Shown: positions 1 through 16,942, numbered from the stretch's first letter. The stretch: DNA of 64,000 nt from Basidiobolus meristosporus CBS 931.73 (GCA_002104905.1 MCFE01000038.1:124001-188000); one strand, 5' to 3'. The notes: generated by a model from the letters alone, not told the origin. Numbers and translations are program-made.

Positions 1-3000
1 ATTATTCTTAACCCCACGCTGGAGAATCACCACTTGCTCCTTGGCAACCTCGGTGACAACCTGTTGGAGTTCTTGAATCTGCGAGCTAATCCGATCAATC
101 TGTGATGCGAATTCCCTGGGAATGGCGGCGTACACTTCCTTGTTGACTAGTATCTTTTGCTGCTCGAACAGATTCTCCACTCTATCGTCTAGCTTGCGGA
201 GCTCTTCAATGATGCTACCTATGCCCTTGCCATTCTGTTGGGTGTTGCCAATGGATTTACGAAGAAGCTCTTGCTGGCGAACAATCAAAGCGCCAAGCTC
301 CCTTCGAAGGTTGTTCACACCCGCTCCTAACGATTGAATGTGCATATTCTGTGCCTTGATGGCATCCAGAACCCTTTCATCGTTGGCTATCTTATCTTGG
401 CGAACGAGAATTGCGTTTATGGCCTCCCCTAGACCGGTTATTTTGTCATTCAACGCATTTACCTCACCGTGAATGATCTTGTTCTCAGACGTTGACTGGT
501 TCTGGCCACGTTTTTGGTTCTGAATTATGACATTCTGTCGATTGCTAAGAACACGGACTTGTTCATTCATGTTGAACATGAGTTTGCTCAGGGTCTGTAT
601 TTCGTCGACGATCTGTTTGGGGATATGGCTTATTACTTGTGGCCTTGTCAAATCGCCCTGTCGTCTGACGATGTTATTCACCGCACTACTTAGATCGGTA
701 AACCTCTGGATTAAGAGTTCCATTCGCGAATTGTTGCCCGCCTGGTTAGGGCCATTTGCACGCAAGATCTCTGTCTGAACTGTCAGCAGTTTGGTCATCT
801 GAGCGCGGAGTTGTTCTAGTTGTTGGTTCATTTTTTCAATACTTTCCGCTTGCTGCTGTAGTACTTTGACGACATCATCCCGCCGCAAAAGCTCTGACTG
901 CTCAGAAAGAATCTGATTGACTGCGTTCTTGAGAGGACCGAATTCTTGGGCGATGTCGGAGACGTACTTGCTGATGGTGGTAAGGTGACGATCGTCTTTC
1001 CTCTCCAGTTGCAACAGGTTGCTTTGCCCCTGCGATAGCTTGGCAATTAGATTACCCAGAGCTGAAAAGCGGGAATTCAGATTTTCAACTACGGCTAATG
1101 CCTCCCGGGATATCTGTGAGCCAACCTCGGGATTGCCCAGCTGCTTTTGATACCCAATGATCTGGGCGACTATATCACGCAGTGCTCGAAGCTCGCCGTA
1201 TATCGGCCTAAGAACTTTGTTCGTTTCTTCTCCTGAGCCGCCATTAGAGGAATCCAGCTTCGTAAGAATAACCGACTGCTGCTCTACCAGACTGGCGAAG
1301 CGCGAGTTCAGGTCGTTCAGTTTTCGGTCCAAATTGTTGATTTGGCTTGACTGAACTTGCAGTATTTTGACGACTTGGTCGTTATTGAAAATTTTGGCTT
1401 GAGCTGCGAACGTGTCTCTCACAAAGCCCGTGAGGCCATTCAGCTGCTCCGAGAGGGTGTGTATCTCATTGATCAAGCGTTCTGGCACCTTTCTGCTAGA
1501 ATCTCTCGCAATGATTGCCATCTGGCTATTGGAGAACTGGTTCACTGACTGGATCAATTCTCCAAAGCGCGAGTCAAGCTTCCTTAACTCCTCAACAACC
1601 TCTTCAGGAACACGCCCATTCAGTTTAGCATTGAACAGTCTTCCTTGTTGCACAACTAGTTGGTTAATGAAGTTTTGAAGACCAGTAAGCTTCTCAATAA
1701 TGGCGCTATCACGGACCCTATCGCCACTATAACCAACACGTCTAAGCAGCATGGCCTGAATGCGTACGATCTCGTCCACCTTTCTGGCTAGACCCAGTAA
1801 CTCATTGTCAACCTTATCGGTCTTTCTGAGATTCTGCTTCAACAGCTCTGTATGAGTGAGGAGGATCTGTGTTTGTTCTGCATATAGGTTTTTCACATAA
1901 GACCCTAGCTGTCTGATGGAGTCCAGGATATAGCCCGCATTCTTGTTTACCTCCGCAGCGATCGCGCTTCCCTCTTTTTGACGTAAAGCACTTTGCTGTG
2001 CTAAAAGTCGATCCACAGTGTCGCTGAGTTTGGTGATTTTGGCGTTTATCACGGATATAGCAAATGGAACTTTTTGGTTGTATGAATCTTTCCATCTGGT
2101 CTGTAGAATTGCGGTCTGCTGGTTAACCAGTTTAAAGACGATATCACGTAATTCTGCCAACTCATTTGCGGTCTTGTCGAGGGAGGCGGTATTGTGGTTT
2201 TCCTGGCCCATCAAAGCCTGCTGCCCATTTACGAGTTGTTGAACCCGGTTCCCTAAAGTGGTAAGCTTATAGCTTACATTTTTGAAGGTTTGCATTTGCT
2301 GTTCACCAAGTGCACCAATGCGTTTAAGAATCTCGAGCTGCACGACCGAGGTACGGCTTATTCCCTGGTTGAGTTGAATCAGCTCAGCAGTAAGCTTTTC
2401 GAACCGAGAGCCGACTCCATCCGCAAATGCCTTTCCTCCACCAAGTCCAAGGAGGATTCTCTGTTGCTCCGAGAAGATTTGCCCAATAGCGTTGCTAAGC
2501 TTGCTTAGTTCCGCTCGTAATCTCTCCGCTTCTTTGGCTACATCCTCAGAAAAGTCGCCGTGAACATTTCGAGCCAGAGCGTTTTGCTGCTCTAGGATCA
2601 AACGAGCGTTTCTACTGATTTCTTGCAACACTGCAAAGAGACGACCATCGTTAACACCACTTCGTTTGGCGTCGGTGGATTCCTGCTCGTACAATGCTTC
2701 TTGTTGCTTGAGAACCTGATCGATTTTATTGTTCAGCTTCCCAACCTCAAACGAAAGGCTTTGAATTCCCCTGTTTTGTCCGTCGAAGAAACGCACTATT
2801 TCATTGCGGGTGATAAGTTGTGACTGAGATTGAGCCAACTTGCTGACGATATCGAATAGCTGCTCGAATTGCTCATTATAGTTGTGAGCGTCAGTGTTCG
2901 GAGAGGGCTGTCCTTTGTATTGAAGAAGTTGATCTTGCTTCAATAGAAGCACTCGAATGAACTGACCAAGCTGATTCAGGCCTGCTTCTATGTTAGCGAT

Positions 3001-6000
3001 CTCTTGTTTCAACTCGGTTGATAGGCCAGCATTGGATTTGGCAAGAATCAATCTCCTCTGTTCGTCAATCAATTGAGAGACCGCTTTTTCTAATTCAAAC
3101 AGTCGGGCGTTTGTATTGGAGTCACCATTGTGTACCTCATAGTTGACTAGCTTCTGTTGCTGACTAATCAATTTGGTGACATCGGATCCGAGGGCATTCA
3201 GTTTTTGGTTCACAAGTCTAAAATTGTTGTCTTGAGATCTCCAGAGCATGTTTACTGCCTTGAGCAGCCCAGCTTGATATTTGGTTAGGTCGTTCACTGC
3301 CATATTGAGCCTTCCAATTTTGGCATTGATCTGTAGTGCGATTTTCTGTGTATCTTCACTTCGAGAATTGACATTTCGCAACAAAGCGCTTTCCTCCTCA
3401 ACCACGTGCTGAATGGCTTGGTTCAGGAGGAGCAGTCTCCGTGTCATATTCTCAATGTCACCAAGACGTTTGCCTGAGATATTTGACGCCACATAGGCAA
3501 AGAGTTGGTCTTGCCCATCAGTTAGCCTTTGGACTGCCCTGTACAGGCCAGTCAGTGCCCTTATTTGATCGCCGTAATTATGATCTGCGTTACCCCGACC
3601 GGGGTGGCTTTTTTCCCACTCTATCAATCCGTTTATAGAGTTCTGGATTTGGGCTGTCTGCGCACCAAGTCTTTTGATATCTTTGGATTGTGACTCAATC
3701 AAAGAGAAGTACTTCGGTATGTTCAAGAGCACGTTCTGTTGCCTATTGAGGAGCGCCGCAATATCGTTCAGTTGTCCAAATCTCGCCATTATCAAGTCAA
3801 GTCTCTTGTTTGTATCTTGAGCATTAGCAGCGTTCTCTTTGCTAAGATGGCTCAAAATTTCATTCTGTTGGTTGACTAGTCGATCAATAACAAAACTCAG
3901 TTTCGCCACACGTTCGTTCATGTTTGCAACACTTCTCTCCAACCCAGAATCTTGATTCCCGTTGATTTTCAATGATAATAGCTTCTCCTGATCTTGAACC
4001 AATTGATAAACAACAGTGCTGAGCCGCTCCAGCTGTTTATCAGTTTGGAGGTTGCCACGATTATTGCGAACGTATTCGTTGCTGAGAAGATTTCTCTGCT
4101 GCTGGATAAGGGTGCCCATGGCGGTCCTTAGGTTTGCAAGCTGTTGCCCAATCTTGTTTATGTCACCTGAGTAATCCTTCAGCCTTAGAGAGAAATCACC
4201 ACCCAAAATTCGACTTTGTTGCCTTGTAATAAGTGCAAGTACATCATTTAGTCTGTTCAGTTTGCCATGGATCAATTGAACGCTTTGTGCCTCCCCCTGA
4301 TCATTTTTCAGCACTTGTTCTTGCTCGGCACTGATCCTTTCTACTACGTTGTAAATGCGGCTAGACTGCTCTGCCAGCATTTCAATCACTCTTTCGAGGC
4401 CTGCAGGTATTTTCCCGCCAGATCCACGAATTAGCACCCTTTGCTCCTTGATGATTTCCGTAACCGAATAACGTAGCTGGTTGAGCATGGCCTCGAGGTT
4501 ACGGTATTCCTCCGAATCATGGTTAGGGCCGTTTCCGAGAGAGCCGAATCTCTCAGAGATGGCCCGTTGCTGGGTGATCAGGTGATCCATCCTCTGACCT
4601 AAAGAGTTCAACTTGGAATCTAGCACAGCGATTCTGTTATCGTGGCGTGATGGGCTTTCAGGGATTGCTTTTCCACGCAGGAGCTCCTTCTGTTGGTACG
4701 CCAGCAAATTGATTACCTCACCAAGACGTTCTATCTGCATGGATAGTTTCTGGACTTCTTGAGAATTGTACTCCGCGTTAGGCTGGCCTGATTGGGAGCC
4801 AATTTTGCTTGCCAAGATTCGCTGCTCTTGAAGCAGGCGAGTGACAACTGAGCCCAGGTCTGCCAGTTTGTAGTTCACACTTTGGATGTCTCTTCTCACA
4901 CGATCCGAGTTTTTGCCGTTTTCGTATCTACCAAGCAAAACCTGCTGGTCCTGAATAAGTTGATTGACTGTTCTTCGAAGCTGCTCCAGCTTGAGGGTAA
5001 TGTTGTTTCCAAGATTTTTGTCAGCAGCCATATCCACTTTCTGCAACTTGGATTGCTCGTCGAGAAGTTGAATCAGTCTGGTGCCTATCTCCGTAACGTG
5101 ATGGTCCATCTTGGTGATAACGTCTGTTTGCTGCTTAATCCAGTTTTTCTGCGTGGCAAGCATATTTACTACATTCCACAGCCTCTCGAAGTAGCCATTT
5201 AATCTCTTCCAGTGGTCATCCGATAATCCTTCATTCGAGTCTGACAGCTTTATCAACCTTCCCTGTTCGTTTACAAGTCCTCTGATGATCATGCTCAGAT
5301 TGACGATATTTTGGTTTAGATTCCCAATATCGCGGACCAGCTCCTGAGGATAGTTGCCAGCTCTGGGTGGAAGGTAGTAATTGCTTTCCTTGCTAACAAG
5401 CTGCATGATGACCTGCTGTAATTGGCTCAACCGTCTTGCAATATCACCGTACTCCTTACTATCTCGTCCATCAGTGAACCGCTCAAGTAGCTCAGTTTGC
5501 TGGGCAGCCAGCGTTTTCATTCCCTGCTTAACCCCTTCAAGATTTTGGACGACCTTCTCGGAGTCGATGCTGCCTCCGGAGCTTGACCAACCGGTGTTGT
5601 TGATTAGGTTCATTTCCCTCTTGACCAACATATCTAAGGAGTTGCTTGTCTTCCCTAATCTCTGTATCAGCTCTTCAACTGTTCTGATAGATCCGGCATA
5701 GTCAGCGTCTTTATAATCGACTTGTCGGAGCTGTTGAAGCGCAAGCTTTAGGCTTGTAAACAAGCCATCCACTCGTTTGTTAAGGTCTTTCATTTGAGTA
5801 TACTCCCGACTTATGAGTTGCACAGTTTCGGCATGATTCTGCTTTTCCTCCATGGTGCTCTTGTTCAGCCGTTGCTCGATGAAATCCTTGAATTGATCGA
5901 ATTCTTTACGCAGCTGGTAGACCCCTTCATTGTCCTGCAGGGAAGATTTGTCCAAGCGAGAGAGGAAGGAGGATACCTCATTGGAGATTGACGTGATTGA

Positions 6001-7179
6001 CCCCTCCATTCTGCTCAAATTCCCGCGGATCTCTCTCAACTCCTGGCTAGAATTCGAACTGTATGATGGCCTAGTAATATCTTGATTGCTGGAGGAGTAG
6101 CTAGGTAAATTACCAACGGCTCTCAAAAGATCCGTAATTCTTTCATTGATCTCGTTCATGTCTTTGGCGGAACGGACAATGATGCGATTTTGCTGCTGCT
6201 CTATACGGGATTCCTTCGCAGAGACCTGGTTCAAACCCTTTTTGATCTCCGATAATTTTGCGTTGATTGAATCCATCTCGAATAGAGTTTTGGAGGAAGC
6301 CCCTAGCACTCTACTGGTTTGAGATTGGATTTTAGTGTTTTGTTCGGAAACTATCCCGACTGCTCGCGCTAGCTCGGTGATTTTCCTGTTTAATTCATCC
6401 ATCCCTTCTACTACTCCGTCGACATGAGTATTTTGGACGGTGTGGTGCTCTCCTACCCCGCCTTTGGTGGATCTGAGTACTGCTTCAGACAACGCCAAGG
6501 TAAGTTGGTCTAACTTCGCATCTAGTATTTGAAATTCCTTTGATTTCTCTAACTGGGCAGACACGTTGATGTGCGGTCTCTCGACGGCACCCTTCCGAGT
6601 AGTTTGGACATTCGTTGGCAGATCAACTGCCGCTTGTTCGATATACGTATCTCCTCCATCCAAGACAGAGTCAACATATCTCAACTGGCCATCCGGGAAA
6701 AGGGCGACCTGACTACCGGGAGCCACGCTAACAGCACTGGCGAAGTAATTTGATAAAGGATAGTCGCCTATTTCCACAAACGAGGGAAATCCAATTTCCG
6801 ACTCCGCTAATTCGATCCCAAGCTCCTCAATATCATCCCAGGAATCGGCAATGAATTCCAATGGTTGCTCATACACTATGGTGCCAACCAGCTCCTGCTT
6901 CAGACCCAATGGACCGGGATATCCCACGAAGGAGCGATTTCTGAGGGCTGAAGCATGGCTCTTGGTTATCAAAGGGCCTCCAGTCTTCTGGTGAGAAGGC
7001 TTGCTCTTGGGTTGGATTGCCTTGTTTTCGAGGGGGTGATCTTGATCAAGTTCCTTTGATGCACCTGAATCGCCATTTACAGCATGGGCTACGGCCAGCT
7101 GTGAGATTAGGAAAAGATTACGACGAAAATTGGATTTACGAGGAGCATCACTATTGCTGGCTGAGGTTTCGAATAACAT
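1..7179 (-). CDS. Giant helical-repeat protein A (3'-partial; at least 2393 aa, continues beyond position 1); paralog of the plus-strand giant protein
   Basis: I read plus-strand frame 1 from 1 to 7179 and found no TTA/CTA/TCA triplet, so the minus frame is open throughout. First ATG at 7179, upstream in-frame stop at 7203-7201. Begins MLFETSASNSDAPRKSNFRRNLFLISQLAVAHAVNG, contains VALFPDGQLR, then recurring LxxxVxxLVxxQxxLL units. It has no stop inside the window, which is the likely reason it is absent from the ORF track. The 5' exon structure is uncertain: an intron-like GTAAAT..CTAAT..CAG lies at 7139-7099. Confidence 0.92.
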   Translation of the reverse strand, partial: MLFETSASNSDAPRKSNFRRNLFLISQLAVAHAVNGDSGASKELDQDHPLENKAIQPKSKPSHQKTGGPLITKSHASALRNRSFVGYPGPLGLKQELVGTIVYEQPLEFIADSWDDIEELGIELAESEIGFPSFVEIGDYPLSNYFASAVSVAPGSQVALFPDGQLRYVDSVLDGGDTYIEQAAVDLPTNVQTTRKGAVERPHINVSAQLEKSKEFQILDAKLDQLTLALSEAVLRSTKGGVGEHHTVQNTHVDGVVEGMDELNRKITELARAVGIVSEQNTKIQSQTSRVLGASSKTLFEMDSINAKLSEIKKGLNQVSAKESRIEQQQNRIIVRSAKDMNEINERITDLLRAVGNLPSYSSSNQDITRPSYSSNSSQELREIRGNLSRMEGSITSISNEVSSFLSRLDKSSLQDNEGVYQLRKEFDQFKDFIEQRLNKSTMEEKQNHAETVQLISREYTQMKDLNKRVDGLFTSLKLALQQLRQVDYKDADYAGSIRTVEELIQRLGKTSNSLDMLVKREMNLINNTGWSSSGGSIDSEKVVQNLEGVKQGMKTLAAQQTELLERFTDGRDSKEYGDIARRLSQLQQVIMQLVSKESNYYLPPRAGNYPQELVRDIGNLNQNIVNLSMIIRGLVNEQGRLIKLSDSNEGLSDDHWKRLNGYFERLWNVVNMLATQKNWIKQQTDVITKMDHHVTEIGTRLIQLLDEQSKLQKVDMAADKNLGNNITLKLEQLRRTVNQLIQDQQVLLGRYENGKNSDRVRRDIQSVNYKLADLGSVVTRLLQEQRILASKIGSQSGQPNAEYNSQEVQKLSMQIERLGEVINLLAYQQKELLRGKAIPESPSRHDNRIAVLDSKLNSLGQRMDHLITQQRAISERFGSLGNGPNHDSEEYRNLEAMLNQLRYSVTEIIKEQRVLIRGSGGKIPAGLERVIEMLAEQSSRIYNVVERISAEQEQVLKNDQGEAQSVQLIHGKLNRLNDVLALITRQQSRILGGDFSLRLKDYSGDINKIGQQLANLRTAMGTLIQQQRNLLSNEYVRNNRGNLQTDKQLERLSTVVYQLVQDQEKLLSLKINGNQDSGLERSVANMNERVAKLSFVIDRLVNQQNEILSHLSKENAANAQDTNKRLDLIMARFGQLNDIAALLNRQQNVLLNIPKYFSLIESQSKDIKRLGAQTAQIQNSINGLIEWEKSHPGRGNADHNYGDQIRALTGLYRAVQRLTDGQDQLFAYVASNISGKRLGDIENMTRRLLLLNQAIQHVVEEESALLRNVNSRSEDTQKIALQINAKIGRLNMAVNDLTKYQAGLLKAVNMLWRSQDNNFRLVNQKLNALGSDVTKLISQQQKLVNYEVHNGDSNTNARLFELEKAVSQLIDEQRRLILAKSNAGLSTELKQEIANIEAGLNQLGQFIRVLLLKQDQLLQYKGQPSPNTDAHNYNEQFEQLFDIVSKLAQSQSQLITRNEIVRFFDGQNRGIQSLSFEVGKLNNKIDQVLKQQEALYEQESTDAKRSGVNDGRLFAVLQEISRNARLILEQQNALARNVHGDFSEDVAKEAERLRAELSKLSNAIGQIFSEQQRILLGLGGGKAFADGVGSRFEKLTAELIQLNQGISRTSVVQLEILKRIGALGEQQMQTFKNVSYKLTTLGNRVQQLVNGQQALMGQENHNTASLDKTANELAELRDIVFKLVNQQTAILQTRWKDSYNQKVPFAISVINAKITKLSDTVDRLLAQQSALRQKEGSAIAAEVNKNAGYILDSIRQLGSYVKNLYAEQTQILLTHTELLKQNLRKTDKVDNELLGLARKVDEIVRIQAMLLRRVGYSGDRVRDSAIIEKLTGLQNFINQLVVQQGRLFNAKLNGRVPEEVVEELRKLDSRFGELIQSVNQFSNSQMAIIARDSSRKVPERLINEIHTLSEQLNGLTGFVRDTFAAQAKIFNNDQVVKILQVQSSQINNLDRKLNDLNSRFASLVEQQSVILTKLDSSNGGSGEETNKVLRPIYGELRALRDIVAQIIGYQKQLGNPEVGSQISREALAVVENLNSRFSALGNLIAKLSQGQSNLLQLERKDDRHLTTISKYVSDIAQEFGPLKNAVNQILSEQSELLRRDDVVKVLQQQAESIEKMNQQLEQLRAQMTKLLTVQTEILRANGPNQAGNNSRMELLIQRFTDLSSAVNNIVRRQGDLTRPQVISHIPKQIVDEIQTLSKLMFNMNEQVRVLSNRQNVIIQNQKRGQNQSTSENKIIHGEVNALNDKITGLGEAINAILVRQDKIANDERVLDAIKAQNMHIQSLGAGVNNLRRELGALIVRQQELLRKSIGNTQQNGKGIGSIIEELRKLDDRVENLFEQQKILVNKEVYAAIPREFASQIDRISSQIQELQQVVTEVAKEQVVILQRGVKNN

Positions 7180-7314
7180 TACTTTGTCACTATCCTTAGC
7201 TCAATAGGAAATTCTAGGAACAGCTGTCGAGTATATTATGCCTGGTTTGGTCGATTAGTTTCTCCAAATGGATGACGAAGAGAAGCGATATTGTATATCG
7301 ATGAGTCAGATATA

Positions 7315-8256
7315 TCAAGTAAAAAGCAGATCCCAAAAATGTGGTGTGTTAGCGGAGAGGAAACCAAGCCTTTCGAGGAACAAAATTTTACGAATTGAAT
7401 GTATGTCAAAATTGATGGCGCCCTTGGAAATGTCGTCTGCAGGGACTTTTATACTGTTAGTGATTTCCGGCAGAATTGCAGCGAATCCATGAAACGGGGT
7501 TACACAATTCACTATGAATGAAACTGTTGAATCGACATTTCTTTGCAGTGTTTTAAGAAGATGCCAATTTTCTCCTATTTGTTCGTGCCGTTTGGCTAGC
7601 GTATCGCTGATTGATACCCCGTTGATCGCACCATCATATGGGCTGGAGGTCGTAACGGAGGGGCTTCGTGCATTTCTCAATTTGAGACTATTAAACAAGC
7701 CCCGGGCAACCCATTGATCGAGTACTTGGGTGCATTTCATATCCGCAGACGCGTCATTACAAGGAAAGAACTTTATCTAACCTTCGATATATGAATGTTT
7801 GATGTTGAGCCCAGAGCTGGGATCACCAATGATATGAGGGATCAAGCGGTTCCCCATCGATTGAACGTGGTCCTGTGGAAGGGTGCTCCCGATCGAGGCT
7901 TAAAAAACACATCCAGGTTTAAAAGCTACATGTTGCCAATGGTACCCCATCTGCGATAGTGAGCGCTGTGATTGCTGCATACCCATGCGTTTCTTTAAAC
8001 ATTATGATGGGTTTGAAGAAGTTACGAAACAGCCAGAACGCCCCACTATGTGAGCTAGCACATCCGGCTTGTCTCTTCGGAGCAGCCGCCGTTCTTGCCG
8101 GAGCATGAGGTGATCGGTCTGGATTTCATCCTGAGTGCTCATGAAACTTGGTGGCAGACTAGGCGTTTCCTCACAGAAGCCCCTCACCGGTCCACTGGTA
8201 TGTTTTCCGGTATGTGGTGAAGGCACTTCTTCGTTCGATCGTGCACCAGATATCAT
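7315..8256 (-). pseudogene. Decayed coding-like sequence between the two giant genes
   Basis: Track ORFs 8002-8256 and 7315-7740 lie in the same minus frame, separated by three in-frame stops. No family recognised. Confidence 0.25.
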
Positions 8257-8698
8257 GGATCTAGCATACTATGTGAGATTCATGCCATCTTGTGATTCGG
8301 CCAGAGGACTCAACACCAGCCAGCCTCATCAGGGAAAGGCGATCCATATGGAATCAACAATTTGTCAATACTCTCCCCAATTGGTTGACCCAAATCTATG
8401 GTAAAAGGCCTGGTGATGTTGTATTAACAACAAGCATGTTACATGTCGGTGGATTGTTTCCGGAAGAAAATCATGACCGCGTATCTCAAAACCAGAAAAA
8501 GACCGATGCTAATGCAATGAAGACTGTGCATAACCCACCGAACCTTATAAATATGAAGAGATTCAAAGCGGTGGATACTCCACTTTCCTTACGCAAACGA
8601 ACACAGTGCAAAGTCTCACGTTTGAGTATTTGACATCACAGTTTTGCATTCAATCATCAATTTCATAGACTGTTATAGTATCGAACATTCATCGCACC

Positions 8699-11600
8699 AT
8701 GTTGGCCAATTCCAATAGAACTTATGCTGGGAAGAATCGGCTCATGGCGTTATATCTGTTCAGCCAGCTTGTATGGAGCAGTGCAAGCAACGGAGAGGAT
8801 TTGAGCCCAGTCGTTGATAGCGACACTAGGGAATCTCTTGCTAATCAGAGAAAGCCCATGATTTCTCACGCCACTAGCAATGCCCTTGACAGACATCCAC
8901 AGCATTCCAGATCTTCAGGGCCAGCAAAAAGCTTGGATATTCATACACTAGTGAATGAGCACCCTGCTGAACGCAAATCACCAGGGGCCTCGGGTGAGCA
9001 GATCGTACTCTTTCCTGACAACAAGTTGAGGCTTCTGGGAGGCGCTCAAAACTTGAACGACAAGGAGTTTGGTTTAAACGAGTTAGCCCGTGCTGGTTAT
9101 GGGCCGAAGAAAGATGGTAAGTGGTCGATTGAATAGTGGAGATGAGAACACTCCTAATCCAATGATTTCGATTTAGCTAAGAAGCGATCTGGAACATATG
9201 CTCCAATTCAAAAGAATGTAAAGCAGTCACCGAAAAGCCAGTCACACAAAGAAGAAAGGCTGAATGATAGAATTGACAAGGGAGTCCTTGAACTAGAGCC
9301 GAAGGTACCAGGGCTCTCTCCTCGACAACACTCCCGCGCCAACCATTCGGGGATACCTGGGGAACTCCCCCAAGTAATTCAGGAAGAAGCGGCTGATACC
9401 AAAAAAACTCTAGACCGAATGGGGACCCTTAGAAGCCTTCTCGGAGAATTATCCGCTATTGAGAAAAACACTCGTATCATGAATCAGGAGACACGCCAGT
9501 ATGTTAAGAATACTGCGACAAGGGTGCAGCAAGCCTTTGGCGCTATTGAGAAAGCGCTCAGCCAACAGTCCGAACTTCGTCGACGCCGTCAGGGTGACCC
9601 ATTCGTGGTAGGAACTAATGAAGTTCACGAGATGGATCATAAGATTCAAATGCTTATCGAGGCGATGTCGATTGTATTAAATGAAGTTAAATCCTCATTT
9701 TCTCTTCTTGGCGACTCGACAATGCTTGCTACCTCAACCACTAAGCATATTGACTCGAAGATTGATGATTTATTCACTGTGGTCGGTGCTTTTACCCAAA
9801 AGCAAAGTACCCTGCTTGGGCGTATCACTCAACTCTCGCAATCACAAGAACTGAGCTTTAGAAAAGTCAACCAGCGATTGAACTCTCTTGGGGACGGCAT
9901 CAACCAGCTTATGGCCCGTCAAGGACAACTTTGGAGCAAGTATGGACATGATACTGTGAATAGTTTTGGGTTTACCCAAACCAAACTACAGGAATTGGGG
10001 AAATCAGTCGAAGGGATAGTGAATGAGCAACGGAAGCTTGTGTATTTCTTATCCAAAGGGAATGCTATCAGGTCAACAGGAGTACTGAAAGAGCTTTCGA
10101 AGCTCGACGGGGGAATGAATCAACTGTCGAAATTTGTTCAACGTGTGCTTGAGCATCAAAACAAGTTGTTGTCGTACACATTGAAGGGCAACGACTCGAT
10201 CAAGAAACAAGACAAAAGTCTGCGCATCTTTGGAGAGCAATTAGACAACCTATATAGAATGGTAGATCAGGTGGCAGTAACCCAAAAGCATTTAATCACC
10301 CGCGAAGAAATTATCGATCTGTTCAAGAAGCAAAATGGAGATATTAAAGGCCTGTCCTTAGAACTTGCTGAAATTGGCAATCGAGTCGTTCTACTACTTA
10401 ACCGACAGAAGGATGCGCTGAGGAGTGGCCAAACAAAAAGTAAGGAGTTGAATGAACTAGGCCAGATGCTTTCGCAGGTGGACGGGGGTGTACGCAAGTT
10501 ACTGGTGCAACAGAATATACTGCTGCAAAATGGGCCGAAACTACACAAGGACGTTACGCAAGTCGGAGCATTGCGCGGGCAACTTATGAACCTTAGAAAG
10601 GTTGTCTCCCAAATATCTGAAAGACAGGATCACCTCCTTCAACAACAGCAAGCAGGCACAAAGTATATTCTGGATGATGTTGGCCAGGTGAAAAATAATC
10701 TTTCCAAGCTGAGCCAAGCTGTGGAGAAAATCACACAGCTTCAACTGAACCTCATACAACGTGGTGGTTTAACTCCAGAACAAGCACATGACCTTCAATA
10801 CATCAAGTCCGAGTTGGGAAATCTGGATGGAAAGGTTGCGGTTCTGGTAGAGCAGCAACACGTGCTAGTCAATAAGCTTTCTGCAGGTCCATCAGGTAAC
10901 AAAGGAATCGTCCGAATTGTTCGCACTCTCGATGAACTACGTAAAGCAATATCCCAACTGACGAAGCAGCAAACCTATGTTCTATCCCAAAAACCCGATA
11001 TAGCCGCTAGTCAAAACATTCTAAATGGAGTTTCCCAACTTAACAAGAAACTCTTAAGCCTAGGCAAGGATGTGGATCAATTGTTCGCTTTGCAGAAGAC
11101 TTTGCTTACTCAATCAGCTAAAGACTCGAGTACCATAGTTAAGATAACCGAGAAATTGGATTCGAAAGTTGGACAGCTTGATGCTTATGTAAAGGAGTTG
11201 TTGTTGGAACAGAAGGCCGTTCTACTGGATACTTCGAAGTTGATCAAACAGAATTTGATCCAGAATGATAAGCTCAGTGCAGAAGTGAAGGCTGTGGACA
11301 AAAAGTTGGAAAATCTGGTGCGAATTCAGTTTAACCTACTGAAGCGTATCAATGGCGAGCGTAACCCCAAAGAGACCGTTGCCATTCTTCAGAAGCTAAG
11401 CGAACTCACAAGCCTAACAAACCAGTTGATGGAACAGCAAAAGAAGTTGGCCTACGCTTCTTCTACTGGAAAAGTCTCACAGACGACCCTTCAGCAGTTA
11501 GGCACACTAAACGAGAAATACAACCAGCTAGCAAAAATTATAGACCAAATTTCCTCCAAGCAAAACACTCTGGTTGATGTTTCTAACGATAGCAATGCTA

Positions 11601-14600
11601 CGGGGCACAAACTCGAAGAACAAATTAACGAAGTCAATCATCGTCTGCTAGGCCTTTCAGATTTCATCAAGAAAACATTTAATGAGCAAACGCAAATACT
11701 ACACACACGTGAAATCGCCTCTTTACTTGGGGATCAAAATCAACGTTTAGCTGGTCTTGGTGTTAAACTTGGTGAACTGGGCAACCAATTTGATAAGATG
11801 ATCAACGGGCAAGAGGTCATTGTAAAGAAACTTGGGCAAGTAGCAATAGATGACACGAAGCGGGACCGAGCTATTGCTGTTGAGCTGGGAACCTTACGAG
11901 AAGTTTTAAGAAAGCTAGTTGATTCCCAGAAGCATCTGTTGGGTCCGGAAGTGGTTCATAAAGTTGGGGAGGGCGTGATTAAATCGATCGAAGGCCTAAA
12001 TGATCGCATGATACAGCTTGGCAAGATGATTGGAAGCATTAGGGAGGAACAGAGTGTAATAGTTAGAACACTTGGAGAAGGCACGAGCTACAAGCAGATG
12101 GAAAATCGATTTGACCAATTGCACAAACAATTTTCTCAAATGGCCAAGTGGATAAGGCAAATTGCGAGTGAGCAAGGCAAGCTGTTGCAACGAGACGAAT
12201 TACTCGACATCCTCAAAGTTCAGACGAACGGTATTCATACGATCCAGTCAAACCTTACCAAGTTTAGAAATGATGTCGGCCGTATTGTGGATTTACAGAA
12301 AACTTTGCTTCATGACACTCAGGCTGCCAGCCAAAACGATGCGGCTAGAGATGCCGAGTTGCTTGACAAAATGAACGAGCTCAGGAAATTGACTGAAGGA
12401 TTGATCAACGCTCAACAAGTGATCCTACACTCTGATTTGTATAAGACTATTTCCAAGGACGTGCTCTCACAGGTACATCAGATTAACGCACGTCTGGAGA
12501 AACTAGAGCCTACTACCTTTGACCTACTCAAGCAACAGAAGCAGCTACTGGAACTGAACTCAGTAGAAAAACACAAATCAAGCCAGATCTTGACTGGTGT
12601 TAAAGGAGTATCTACAGGAGTCACACTGCTACTGAACGAGATCAAACAGATTCATGGAGAACAAAAGAGAATAATCAGCCAGAACACAGAAATCAAGTCG
12701 GTATTGGAGAAGCAATTAGGCTATATCAACAGAATCAATGGTCAACTAGCGAAATTCTCCACGCAAACTCTCAACTTCTTGTCCCAACAAGCCAAATTCC
12801 TTGAAAGACTAATCGCCTCCCAGGAGAATGATAAGAGTGGCATCAAGGAAACCTTGGAACGGGTGAAGCAACTCCAAAATGCAGTTACGAGTGTGGTACA
12901 CTGGCAGCATTCTCTCAATATCCCTGAGATCCTAGGCTCCTTACCCAAGACGCTGAGTAATCACATCCGTGATATTTCTGCCAAGATTATTCGCCTAACT
13001 GACAACGTTGCCAGTCTTAGTCAACAACAAAGCATCATTGCCAAAAAGGAGGATGGAGAGTTCGGATCAATTCGCCAAGGCTTAAACGAATTGAATGGAC
13101 GCATGGACAAATTTGGGGATGCCATTGGCAAAATATCAAGCGCACAGAATAAGTTGATACACGACGACGAGATATTGAAATTGCTCAACAATCAGACGCT
13201 TCAAATTCACGGCCTTGGGGTTAACCTAAACTCCATTCGCGCGGAAATCTCCAAATTGATAAGCGATCAGCAACAATTTTTCGTCCAAGGATCAAAGTTC
13301 TTCCAAGGCGATAAGGCTAATCTAGATAGGATGAACGCAACTATAGCGTATGTTCGCAAAGTAATGGATCAGCTCTTCAAGCAGCAACAATTATTTTCCA
13401 ACAGCCAGCTTCTCAACCAGTTCCCTAAACACATAGTCCACGATGTGGAAACCTTGAATGGTGAGATGCATAAATTACAAGAATTTGTGAAGGAACTACG
13501 AAAATTACAAACAGCCACCTTAGAAAACCAAATTAAGAGCACTAAGACCACACAAGTACTGGTGCAAGATGTGGAAGTGTTATCAGGAAGGTTCAACGGA
13601 TTAAGTGACTACGTGAAAAAGATCCTAGAGCTTCAGCAAACAATACTAAGAAACGAAAAAATCGGGCCGATTTTAGAAAAATTCTACGGAAATTTCCAAC
13701 AAATTGAAGGTCGCCTTGCTCAATTAGACAAACTTGTCCGTCATATCTTGGAAAATCAACAGTCACTGATTAATACCGATCAATTCAAGACATTTGCACG
13801 CAGAAATAGCTTGGATGATAAGAAAATGGTTGAAACGCTCAGCAATCTCCACAACACTATCCGAGTCTTGATTGAGCAACAGAAAGACCTTATCAAGCCA
13901 GAGATGTTAAACTCTGTGACTGGGAATCTTCATCATTCCATTCAATCAGTTGGGGAAGAAATCGCCGGATTAAGCGAGAAGATTAATCAAATTCAAGCTG
14001 AGCAAAGTCAGGTCATAAAAGAACAGCACAATCTAAACCTCAACTTCAATGAAGCCGTCAAGGGATTGAACAAGCAGCTGATTGACCTGAACCAACGTGC
14101 TTCTCGACTGTTTGTGCAGCAAAAAGATATATTACAAAATGAGCAAGTTCTAACGGTCATGGCAGAGAAATTAAATGACTTGGCACCGATCAAGAGCAAC
14201 CTCGCTATGGTGAATGAGAAGCTTAACTCTTTACTGAGCCAGCAGAAGGATATTGCTTTGATAGCCCAAAGATCCGGTGGTGAAGGGCCCAAAGATAACA
14301 AGCAAATCCTGGATCGCTTCACTTCATTTAGTCAAATGGTGCGGCATATGATTACCAAGCAAACTACCCTATTGTCAGAGCAAATCATCGAAAAGGCGCC
14401 CAAGAGGTTACTCGGGCAAATCGTAGCATTAAACAGGCAATTCGATCTTCTCAACCTTGGACTTGGGAAGCTATTTGAGGTTCAAAAAAAGATATTAAAC
14501 CCCGGTTACAGTGATGTTTCGAGCAATCGAATCTTGAGCGGATTGGATCTTCTTTCGCAGCATTACTCGACAATATCAAAAACCGCCAAAAATATCGAAA

Positions 14601-16942
14601 AGACACAGAACAATCTGATGAGTCGTGAAGAATTACTAGCCATTCTCCAAAAACAATCTGGTGCCATTCAAAATGTTCACACGAAGGTTGGGCAACTTGA
14701 CGAGAAAGTTGGGGTCTTAATAGGCCAACAACGAGCTCTTTTGGAGTCTATTTCCCAGAAATTTAAGCCGACAAGTGATTCTCATGAGACGTTTGGTGCG
14801 GTCCTGACCCATCTAGAAGGGTTAGAGAAGGGGATTAAATACATCTCCCAAGAACAGCGTAAACTCTCTCAGCTGAATACAGACCAAAGAAACAAAATGG
14901 ACGATAAAATCCTAAACTCAACCCATTCCTTGGATCAAAGAGTGGCACGATTGGCACAGGTTGTTGGTCGCCTATTTGAGAATCAAAGAGCCCTTATTAT
15001 TGCCGAAAAAGACACCAAAACGCCCAAGGGAATATTTGCCGCGGTAGAGAAGTTAAATGCCAATTTGGTACATTTGGATGGTGCAGTTCAATTTCTGGTC
15101 AAGGATGTTCAAAAAGTAGATGCCAGAATTTCTGCCTTATTGCAGCTACCACAAGATATGGAGAATGTTAAAAGCAGGCTAGCACACCTTACTGGTGCAA
15201 CCAAGAGACTAGTTGATCAGCATACTCAGCTGTTTGGCTTCACCAAAGAAGGTATTGACACACTGACGAAGCAGCAAAGGGTTATGGCAAGCAATGTGAA
15301 CAGTAGACTATCGGAAATTACGAAGCTTGTTGATCAGCTTATTCAACAACAAAAACAGATTATGTCGGCAGAACCAAAGAACTCTCCCAAGCATTCGAAG
15401 GCGGTCGCCACTTTGATATCCAAGATATTTAAAATAGAACAAGTGATCGAGTTTCTACTGAACGAGCAGAGAAAGATGTACCAGGCGGATCGCAACGAAC
15501 AAAAGGAGCAATTCAATAATCTAGATCGAAAACTGAATTTATTTGGAGAAGCGTTGAAACAGTTTGTTAATCAACAGCATTCTGTAATGAAAATACTTGG
15601 TGTAGTGGAACGACAAACTGCTGTTGTCAACGATATGAGCAATAAGCTCGGAAATCTCAATAGCATTGTCAGCACACTTGTATCACAACAACAGCAACTC
15701 CTTGTCTATACGAAAGAACATGCTCAGACAGAGAATCCACAGATCGATGGACGCTTAACAGAGCTGAGAGAGACTGTTTCGAAAATTCTTCAACAGCACA
15801 AGATTCTACTTGAACGCGGGTTACAAGAGCTGAGCTCAGGAAGAGATAGGAAACATCGTGAGATCACCGCTCAATTCGACAATCGTTTAAGCCAAGTGGC
15901 TTCTTTGGTTCAGCAACTTGTCCATGAACAAGAAACCGTCTTATCGCAGACCAAGCACCAAAACCAAGATAACCCAAGGATTGTATCGGCCGTCTCTCGT
16001 ATCTCAGGACATATTAATGAGCTTGCTAAGCTGATGACAAGCTTAAATAATGAACAATCCACATTAATTGAGCGTGGCTTTACACACCTTTCCCAGCAGA
16101 ATAATCAGGAATTTAGGCACGTGGATGAAAGGTTGGACCAGATTGGCTCCGCCCTTAAACGACTTGCTGGAGATGAGACTAGCTCGCTTATCAATCGATT
16201 CGAAAATGCCTCACGACAGCAATCACAAGAGAACAAAGCAATGAAATCCCAACTCTACCAAATTACTAGGGTTCTAGAAAGAATCGTCTCCAAGACAGAT
16301 CTGATTTCCCCGGATAATACAGGAGATATTACGGATGTAAGACGCCGTCTAGACTATCTCAATCAAGTTCTGACCAGACTCACGGAAATTCACAACGACC
16401 GAAAACACCTGGCATTAACCGAAGATCAATACCAGAAGGTGAGCTACTTGATGAATATGATCCCTGCCTTAAATGAATCTATCAAACGATTTGACTTGTC
16501 TGGATCCATCCATTCGCCGGAAAGCTTGAAACAACTATCAATAATCAGGGAATCTATTGAGGAGTGTAATAGAGCTATCATTGGTCTTCAAAAGGTTTTG
16601 AATTTGAGTGGTCCTGCAGTAGCATCATTTGTATCGCCTGAAATCAGTACACCCGATGCTGCCGTAAGAGCAGCCAATTCTAGAAGCGATGATCCACAAC
16701 CACCAGTACTAATAAGTCGAGTCGAACTCGCGAACCCTGGACTGGCACCTTACAGGATATTGTCTAACAATGACGACTCTAACGGAGATAAGAGCACCAC
16801 AAATAATGTCTCTGACGGAGAAGTTGTTGAGGAAGACCCTGCCAAGAGTCTTTATGACAATCACTATTTCAACAATGGATACTGGTACCCTAGAAATGAA
16901 GTCTTCAACGAGGTAATTGGCGGTGGTGAACGTTTACTCTAA
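8699..16942 (+). CDS. Giant helical-repeat protein B (about 2727 aa; exons 8699-9116 and 9177-16942)
   Basis: Track ORFs 8699-9136 and 9419-16942 share a frame. A GTAAGT donor at 9117, CTAAT branch and TTTAG acceptor at 9176 define a 60-nt intron whose removal deletes the stops and opens the frame through to 9419. Start context CACC-ATG; AATAAA at 17008. Contains IVLFPDNKLR, as in paralog A. Confidence 0.92.

Follow-up and report, generated by a model that had tools for sequence, protein, structure and literature searches.

Giant proteins of Basidiobolus tiled by a hierarchical 41/162-residue repeat with a predicted four-helix-bundle fold

Among the proteins that bear force in animal cells, the classical linkers are the tandem helical-bundle arrays of spectrin, talin and vinculin, all of them cytoplasmic. 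In the talin rod and in vinculin/alpha-catenin a long chain of individually conserved helical bundles, each of ~120-170 residues, is held together by very short linkers, and in their four-helix bundles the chain begins and ends at the same pole; the spectrin repeat (PF00435) likewise builds giant proteins from tandem heptad-based bundles, in this case of three helices and 106 residues each, with a continuous helix running from one to the next. Here we describe an array of similar design encoded in a 64,000-nucleotide stretch of the genome of Basidiobolus meristosporus CBS 931.73 (GCA_002104905.1 MCFE01000038.1:124001-188000; hereinafter the window, whose coordinates are used throughout), a member of a genus of gut and soil fungi that are occasional human pathogens. 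Two giant paralogous genes lie side by side in this window: gene B (product P0001, K493DRAFT_334011) and gene A (product P0005). We confirm that their products carry a hierarchical repeat, in which segments of ~41 residues are grouped by fours into units of 162 residues, that the gene family to which they belong is real, conserved and confined to a single genus, and that each 162-residue unit is predicted to fold as a four-helix bundle.

An earlier note on this DNA, made from the sequence alone, had drawn attention to a landmark recurring in B at intervals of 162-163 residues. All seven of these positions (11705, 12191, 12677, 13163, 13652, 14138 and 14624) indeed open with the same motif, [D/N/S/T]-x-E-[I/L]-x-x-[I/L]-[L/M], at that spacing. 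Gap-free autocorrelation with the BLOSUM62 matrix over residues 741-1920 of B, set against 50 shuffles, recovered peaks at lags of 7 (z 8.8), 41 (z 7.2), 80 (z 5.1), 162 (z 3.6), 324 (z 6.2) and 486 (z 6.4), the peak at 162 falling within the 160-167-residue range that the note had put forward. The heptad (lag 7) is the strongest periodicity, with z of 9-11, beside z 4.6 at lag 11. Seven 162-residue pieces of B align nearly gap-free in MAFFT, and a unit profile iterated on five family members tiles residues 245-2577 with ~15 units of ~162 residues (9491-16489, plus strand), of which the last two or three are degenerate or overlapping. The seven best-preserved units, which start at the seven landmarks, span 11705-15115 (plus strand). 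As the unit profile was built from its own hits, we used as an independent test a hidden Markov model (HMM) derived from 33 A-type units only; with this model 14 units were recovered in B, all full-length and in register, with individual scores of 57-96 bits and a sum of 924 bits, as against no more than -3 bits in 100 shuffles of B and no more than 12 bits per hit in reversed B, where the helix periodicity is kept. The repeat that the note had placed at 11705-15110 is thus real but is not confined to those coordinates, since the tiling takes in nearly the whole protein. In A, HMM tiling placed 14 units within the window (16-6408, minus strand); the array continues past the window edge, full-length A carrying ~18 or more units, and the three landmarks noted for A (1383, 882 and 384) all lie inside tiled units. 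In the DNA of B neither Tandem Repeats Finder nor a repeat finder reported any tandem or long direct repeats, in keeping with the remark in the note that the DNA is not visibly repetitive. A higher-order period of 324 residues (two units), suggested by the peaks at 324 and 486 being higher than that at 162, was considered and dropped, there being no consistent odd/even alternation in the pairwise unit scores of B and of the B-type member P0003.

Each unit consists of four related but distinguishable helices of ~41 residues. With sub-unit HMMs trained on other family members, 64 of the 76 sub-units of B and A were placed correctly, a generous count, since some of the sub-units tested have orthologs in the training set; the models scored 21-26 bits at their own positions and 6-15 bits at the others, the latter scores pointing to a relationship among the four sub-units as well. 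The layout of the unit emerges from 80 units of seven proteins aligned together. Helix 1 opens with an Asp/Asn-x-Glu-Ile/Leu N-cap, which is the landmark described above; helix 3 is preceded by a conserved Pro-Lys-Glu-Ile cap; and in each of the 80 units the helices are interrupted at intervals of 39-42 residues by breaks that carry N-cap and Pro motifs. Four glutamines, at unit positions 39, 78, 119 and 161 (spaced by 39, 41 and 42 residues), are conserved in 94, 91, 99 and 97% of the units, respectively. Every one of them occupies heptad position 'a', one turn ahead of the last core leucine of its helix, and the a/d positions preceding them are Leu, Ile, Val, Met or Phe in 80-99% of cases. 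From the helix topology, two buried glutamines would be expected near each pole of the bundle. The anatomy sketched in the earlier note, with four distinguishable sub-units per period, one of them (the third) starting in the manner of PE/PKxI, sub-units ending in Q..LL, and glutamines in the core, is reproduced in the sub-unit scores and the 80-unit consensus.

The note had also held that no named repeat family fits this consensus, and our searches agree. Pfam returned nothing above threshold for the whole proteins, for their terminal regions or for the 80 units taken separately, only scattered coiled-coil noise across 230 families. An exhaustive HMMER search of 1.84 billion representative proteins with a 55-unit profile recovered seven proteins at E < 1e-30, with the eighth match at 3e-11; these seven, together with P0002, which came from a word search, all belong to B. 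meristosporus or B. ranarum, and only Basidiobolus members are tiled in register by the unit HMM. As judged from this search, the family is confined to Basidiobolus. The 93 lower matches (E 3e-11 to 1e-3), which belong to unrelated organisms and include a Bartonella YadA-like protein and proteins from a butterfly, a legume and metagenome-assembled genomes, were rejected as relatives: each matches dozens of coiled-coil Pfam families, and their matches to the unit profile are overlapping, out of register and low-scoring. Searches of the ESM Atlas by shape and by language-model features returned weak, unrelated bacterial rows only (template modelling [TM] score no higher than 0.31; cosine no higher than 0.85), and among the titles and abstracts listed in literature searches on Basidiobolus there was no mention of these proteins.

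Within the family two old subfamilies can be recognized. The B-type comprises P0001, P0002, P0003 and P0004, which are 50-65% identical to one another; the A-type comprises P0005, the B. ranarum fragments P0006, P0007 and P0008 (50-62% identical to P0005) and a further B. meristosporus member, A' (41% identical to P0005). Identity between the two types is ~25-29%, A and B themselves being 25% identical and collinear, and the B. ranarum orthologs of B and A are 50-65% identical to them. At every locus with readable neighboring DNA an A-type gene stands head to head with a B-type gene, namely A/B in the window, A'/P0003 at a second B. meristosporus locus (L002) and P0007/P0004 in B. ranarum (L001). 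The units of B and A correspond one-to-one along one diagonal, with eight reciprocal best pairs, which implies that the array was already long before the A/B split and that each bundle has kept its own identity; the earlier suggestion of old duplications constrained at the protein level is supported by this correspondence.

Some departures from this regular picture were also observed. The B unit at residue 1155 has no one-to-one partner in A, and B lacks ~950 residues (~six units) that P0002, P0003 and P0004 hold between the N-terminal region and the common array, residue 202 of B aligning with residue 1108-1166 of these three proteins. The A' gene (L002:562-9006, minus strand, on contig MCFE01000168.1) is an intact open reading frame (ORF) of 2,814 codons without a gene call in the locus table; its product has a signal-like N-terminus, an LFPD-type motif, ~16 units and a shortened C-terminal aromatic motif, and the gene lies head to head with that for P0003. 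In B. ranarum the pieces of the A-type gene are scattered over three or more short contigs and carry separate annotations, as P0006, P0007 and P0008, and P0004 ends at the edge of its contig (L001, JASJQH010007398.1), so that the family is under-counted and fragmented in this assembly.

The predicted fold of the unit comes from AlphaFold2 monomer models. A single unit (P0001:1142-1309, nucleotides 12182-12685; 80-row alignment) was modeled as a compact, long up-down four-helix bundle with a mean predicted local distance difference test score (pLDDT) of 85.2 and a predicted TM score (pTM) of 0.77; its helices, of 31-44 residues, cover positions 4-47, 51-81, 84-87 plus 92-128, and 133-167, and the turns between them are of 3-4 residues only. 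A two-unit model (P0001 residues 960-1330, nucleotides 11636-12748; 25-row alignment of in-phase unit pairs) was likewise all helical (pLDDT 79.9, pTM 0.51), and in a structural search independent of Foldseek its residues 33-199 and 199-365 each matched solved four-helix bundles separately. The best matches of both models are the soluble domain of Chlamydia IncA (6e6a_B: Z 12.3, root-mean-square deviation [rmsd] 3.7 over 160 residues for two units; Z 11.4, rmsd 3.2 over 146 residues, TM 0.57-0.59 for one unit) and Plasmodium SPECT (4u5a: Z 11.6 for two units; Foldseek E 3.9e-3 for one unit), while the second unit of the two-unit model also matched the coiled-coil domains of Sw-5b (Z 10.3) and MLA13 (Z 9.6). 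In Foldseek searches of the PDB neither model had a match at E<=0.001. As Z values below ~13 are common among helical bundles, we read the matches at Z 8-12 as denoting a long up-down four-helix bundle and not kinship. In the model, consecutive bundles are joined by kinks of 1-2 residues. An up-down four-helix bundle has both chain ends at one pole, which means that the chain cannot be a straight, end-to-end rod in the manner of spectrin; by this topology it would most likely be a hinged zig-zag string of bundles. Of what the earlier note joined in its first reading, the tandem four-helix bundles are upheld at the level of prediction, and the talin/spectrin-like extensible rod is not.

How far does this array resemble those already described? 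An organization into tandem four- or five-helix bundles of the talin/vinculin type is seen here in the one- and two-unit AlphaFold2 models only. The resemblance extends to the long chain, the very short linkers, the individual conservation of the bundles and the placing of both chain ends at one pole; in contrast to those proteins, the present array repeats a single four-helix unit throughout and lacks any FERM or actin-binding module, and the chain begins with a signal-peptide-like N-terminus, whereas the known proteins are cytoplasmic. The Pfam models Talin_middle, VBS, I/LWEQ and Vinculin found no match in B, A or the termini, and talin and vinculin structures were reached in Foldseek at E 0.19-0.37. 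The spectrin repeat differs in having three helices in 106 residues, as against four in 162; PF00435 matched 13 of the 80 units below threshold (best E 2.8e-5; cut-off 29.9 bits) and gave nothing at E<=1 with full-length B and A. The soluble domain of IncA (6e6a, 6e7e) and SPECT are, like our unit, long up-down four-helix bundles of ~160 residues and are its best structural matches (Z 11.4-12.3, rmsd 3.2-3.7 over 146-160 residues), but identity is 10-16% (11-15% for IncA), the scores lie in the range generic to helical bundles, and both are single domains and not arrays; moreover, IncA has a bilobed transmembrane hairpin ahead of its SNARE-like bundle, and the family described here is without a transmembrane-grade segment. 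Among PDB sequences the unit profile found its best matches in de novo designed bundles (E 1.8e-9 to 3e-4), namely single-chain antiparallel bundles of the sc-apCC series (sc-apCC-6, E 1.8e-9) and 2L4HC2, which share regular heptad helices of 30-35 residues and short loops; these matches fit the regular heptad-helix-turn pattern of the unit and, the designs being artificial, denote a likeness of pattern and not descent. With one protein as the query, the sequence search of the PDB gave no match. Apolipoproteins and apolipophorin-III (PF01442 and PF07464) likewise had no Pfam match, and here the heptad dominates over lag 11.

Outside the array, both ends of the proteins carry conserved features. 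The N-termini of B (residues 1-31, 8699-8791, plus strand) and A (~7072-7179, minus strand) have the layout of a signal peptide, in which a charged or basic stretch is followed by a hydrophobic run of 10-12 residues and by small residues at -3/-1, ahead of a Gly-Glu/Asp junction, and the same layout is common to seven members from the two species (B, A, A', P0002, P0003, P0004 and P0007). A hydrophobicity scan found no transmembrane-grade segment elsewhere in the protein, and the C-terminus has neither a hydrophobic tail nor an HDEL sequence. On these grounds we infer that the proteins would enter the secretory pathway via an N-terminal signal peptide. Downstream of it, B has a motif of the type Q-I-V-L-F-P-D-N-x-L-R (residues 99-114, 8993-9040, plus strand), in which the Leu-Phe-Pro-Asp-x-x-Leu-Arg type columns are invariant across the five aligned N-terminal regions. 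At the other end, alignment of the C-termini of B, A, P0003, P0002 and P0008 defines an aromatic motif, L-x-D/N-x-Y-x-x-x-x-G-Y-W-Y-P-x-N-x-x-F (16847-16906, plus strand, in B), which in some members is preceded by Tyr/Gly/Ser/Asn-rich sequence. Neither terminal region has a match in Pfam. The annotated P0005 lacks 18 residues, comprising the basic stretch and the hydrophobic core (7087-7140, minus strand), which the continuous ORF encodes; its gene model seems to excise them as a 54-nucleotide in-frame intron starting at GTAAAT. The same residues are kept in the B. ranarum ortholog P0007 and in all B-type members, and the N-terminal intron of P0005 is probably a mis-annotation.

Taken together, these observations lead us to favor, with moderate confidence, a reading in which Basidiobolus alone makes giant, soluble, secreted proteins that are strings of four-helix bundles with a structural role as a tether or in a matrix. 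A and B are real, old protein-coding genes, and their products would enter the secretory route by way of a signal peptide. Nearly the whole chain would be divided into ~15-21 long up-down four-helix bundles, each of 162 residues and folding on its own, every bundle being assembled from four homologous ~41-residue helices with a heptad core closed near the C-terminal end by the nearly invariant glutamine; with links of 1-2-residue kinks, the bundles would make up a hinged zig-zag chain. Most likely, such a chain would have a structural role, as a long extensible tether or a component of a matrix, either outside the cell or within a secretory compartment, anchored at its ends by the LFPD-type N-terminal motif and the aromatic GYWYP-type C-terminal motif, both conserved. 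The A-type and B-type proteins would be made together from a shared divergent promoter and would probably act together. The function is pure inference on our part. By calculation, unfolding one unit would release ~58 nm of contour (162 residues at ~0.36 nm), and the whole chain something of the order of a micrometer. A more specific version of this proposal, which we consider quite unlikely as it stands, is that A and B co-assemble outside the cell into an extracellular mechanical element of a kind not known before in fungi, a micrometer-scale extensible tether or elastic matrix with bundles loaded in an unzipping geometry, as a Basidiobolus-specific device tied to ballistic spore discharge, adhesive capilliconidia or gut life. 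Several points weigh against the secreted bundle-string reading. The fold comes from monomer models whose alignments are filled mostly with repeats of the protein itself, and prediction as a monomer favors intra-chain packing; the pTM of the two-unit model is low enough to leave the orientation between bundles uncertain. The signal peptide was judged by eye, its 12-residue Kyte-Doolittle mean (~1.7-1.8) does not exceed the values of some internal helices, and the annotated model of A splices the stretch out. Finally, cysteine is nearly absent (0-3 per protein), and such scarcity is unusual for fungal extracellular proteins.

As an alternative, a segmented coiled-coil fiber has to be weighed, in which the 31-44-residue helices would pair with a second chain (A with B, or as homomers) and the glutamine layers would set the register. 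The dominance of the heptad speaks for it, as do the invariably paired head-to-head A-type and B-type genes, which is what one would expect of partners, and the weak profile matches, all of which are to coiled-coil proteins; a core Gln or Asn is, moreover, a known register device in coiled coils. Yet the helices break every 39-42 residues across the 80 units, where inter-chain fibers of the intermediate-filament or myosin-rod type have long heptad segments without interruption, the turns of 3-4 residues are typical of hairpins, a single unit is predicted to fold compactly on its own, and the four positions of the unit are distinct and conserved as a set, which a simple rope would not require. 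We therefore disfavor inter-chain pairing and regard it as unlikely. Another possibility is an intracellular scaffold, in which the hydrophobic stretch, instead of being a cleaved signal peptide, would be either spliced out or used as an anchor in a membrane or organelle. The protein would then act as a cytoplasmic or nuclear linker of the cytoskeleton like talin, vinculin or spectrin. Known tandem helical-bundle arrays are mostly intracellular, and the scarce cysteine, the annotated A model with its intron and the only modest hydrophobicity of the stretch all suit such a role; against this, the stretch is kept as coding sequence with a signal-peptide layout in seven members from the two species, the ortholog of A in B. 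ranarum among them, and Pfam detects none of the actin-, membrane- or integrin-binding domains of the known linkers. To us an intracellular linker seems doubtful, to about the same degree as the fiber.

The nearest solved folds raise the further idea of a lipid-active secreted protein, the bundles opening on lipid in the manner of apolipoproteins, SPECT or NLR/MLKL proteins, so as to coat, bind or perturb membranes or the hydrophobic surfaces of gut microbes or hosts. These folds do include SPECT, IncA, MLKL and the coiled-coil domains of plant NLRs, and the N-terminus is signal-peptide-like, but matches at Z 8-12 are below the level that is specific for helical bundles, the periodicity is that of the heptad and not the 11/22-residue one of apolipoproteins, Pfam finds no Apolipoprotein or ApoLp-III domain, and 15-21 individually conserved bundles are not expected of a simple lipid coat, all of which makes this idea improbable. 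Kex2-processed repeat proteins are described as widespread in fungi (PMC7329392), and a signal-peptide-like N-terminus followed by many tandem repeats would suit a precursor polyprotein cut into many peptides of 41 or 162 residues. B, however, has 8 Lys-Arg sites against 11.6 expected from its composition, and these keep no fixed phase; at no column pair is a dibasic pair present in more than 11 of the 80 units; and the units are far longer than such peptides. With sites below expectation and out of phase, this alternative, alone among the four, is effectively excluded.

If the favored reading of a secreted string of bundles holds, a one-genus family unrelated to the known arrays would have reached the bundle-array design with a different unit, of four helices and 162 residues with a glutamine in every helix core, and its product, unlike the cytoplasmic spectrin, talin and vinculin arrays, appears to enter the secretory pathway. 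The conserved head-to-head pairing of A-type and B-type genes points to a two-component system. The unit is a deeply diverged natural module of helical repeats: at least ~80 copies, at ~20% identity, would keep one fold and thereby offer useful material for protein design and for studies of how the register of a bundle is encoded. Should the proteins be extracellular, they would add a new type to the matrix or spore-surface proteins of fungi; should they not be, they would still be the largest unexplained proteins of this fungus.

Gene B extends from 8699 to 16942 on the plus strand and comprises two exons encoding 2727 residues. Exon 1 (8699-9116), to which the N-terminus of P0001 maps, holds the start codon at 8699, the signal-peptide-like segment and the N-terminal motif; the sole intron (9117-9176, 60 nucleotides, GTAAGT...TTTAG) was located by comparing P0001 with the window sequence; and exon 2 (9177-16942) runs up to the stop codon. 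The uninterrupted ORF at 9419-16942 (plus strand; 7,524 nucleotides, 2507 codons) matches P0001 at 100% identity in a word-based protein search, the annotated protein exceeding it by 220 residues. On the minus strand, a 2,400-codon frame is open from 7200 through the window edge; this is gene A (1-7179, minus strand), which starts at 7179, is open to the edge and is annotated with 3566 residues, P0005 and the window sharing one 204-kb contig. Each of the two frames, 7.5 kb long for B and 7.2 kb for A, has 100% identity with a B. meristosporus protein in the annotation.

Transcription of A and B diverges from an intergenic region 1.5 kb long (7180-8698), which we compared with that of B. ranarum by blastn and MAFFT. 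Two non-coding blocks upstream of A, at 7367-7415 and 7490-7581, share 84-88% identity with the sequence preceding the ortholog in B. ranarum, and are far better conserved than the coding sequence of A (~50% at the protein level). A TATAAAAG box lies between them, at ~7448-7455. As the blocks flank this TATA box, they are probably, together with it, the core promoter and leader of gene A; the same comparison found no comparable conserved block upstream of B. The gene pair also leaves a mark on base composition: over positions 1-16000 of the window the AT skew is strand-specific, at -0.18 to -0.20 over A and +0.18 to +0.22 over B, mirroring the A-rich codons of proteins rich in Gln, Lys, Asn and Glu, so that the two giant genes stand out in a plain composition profile.

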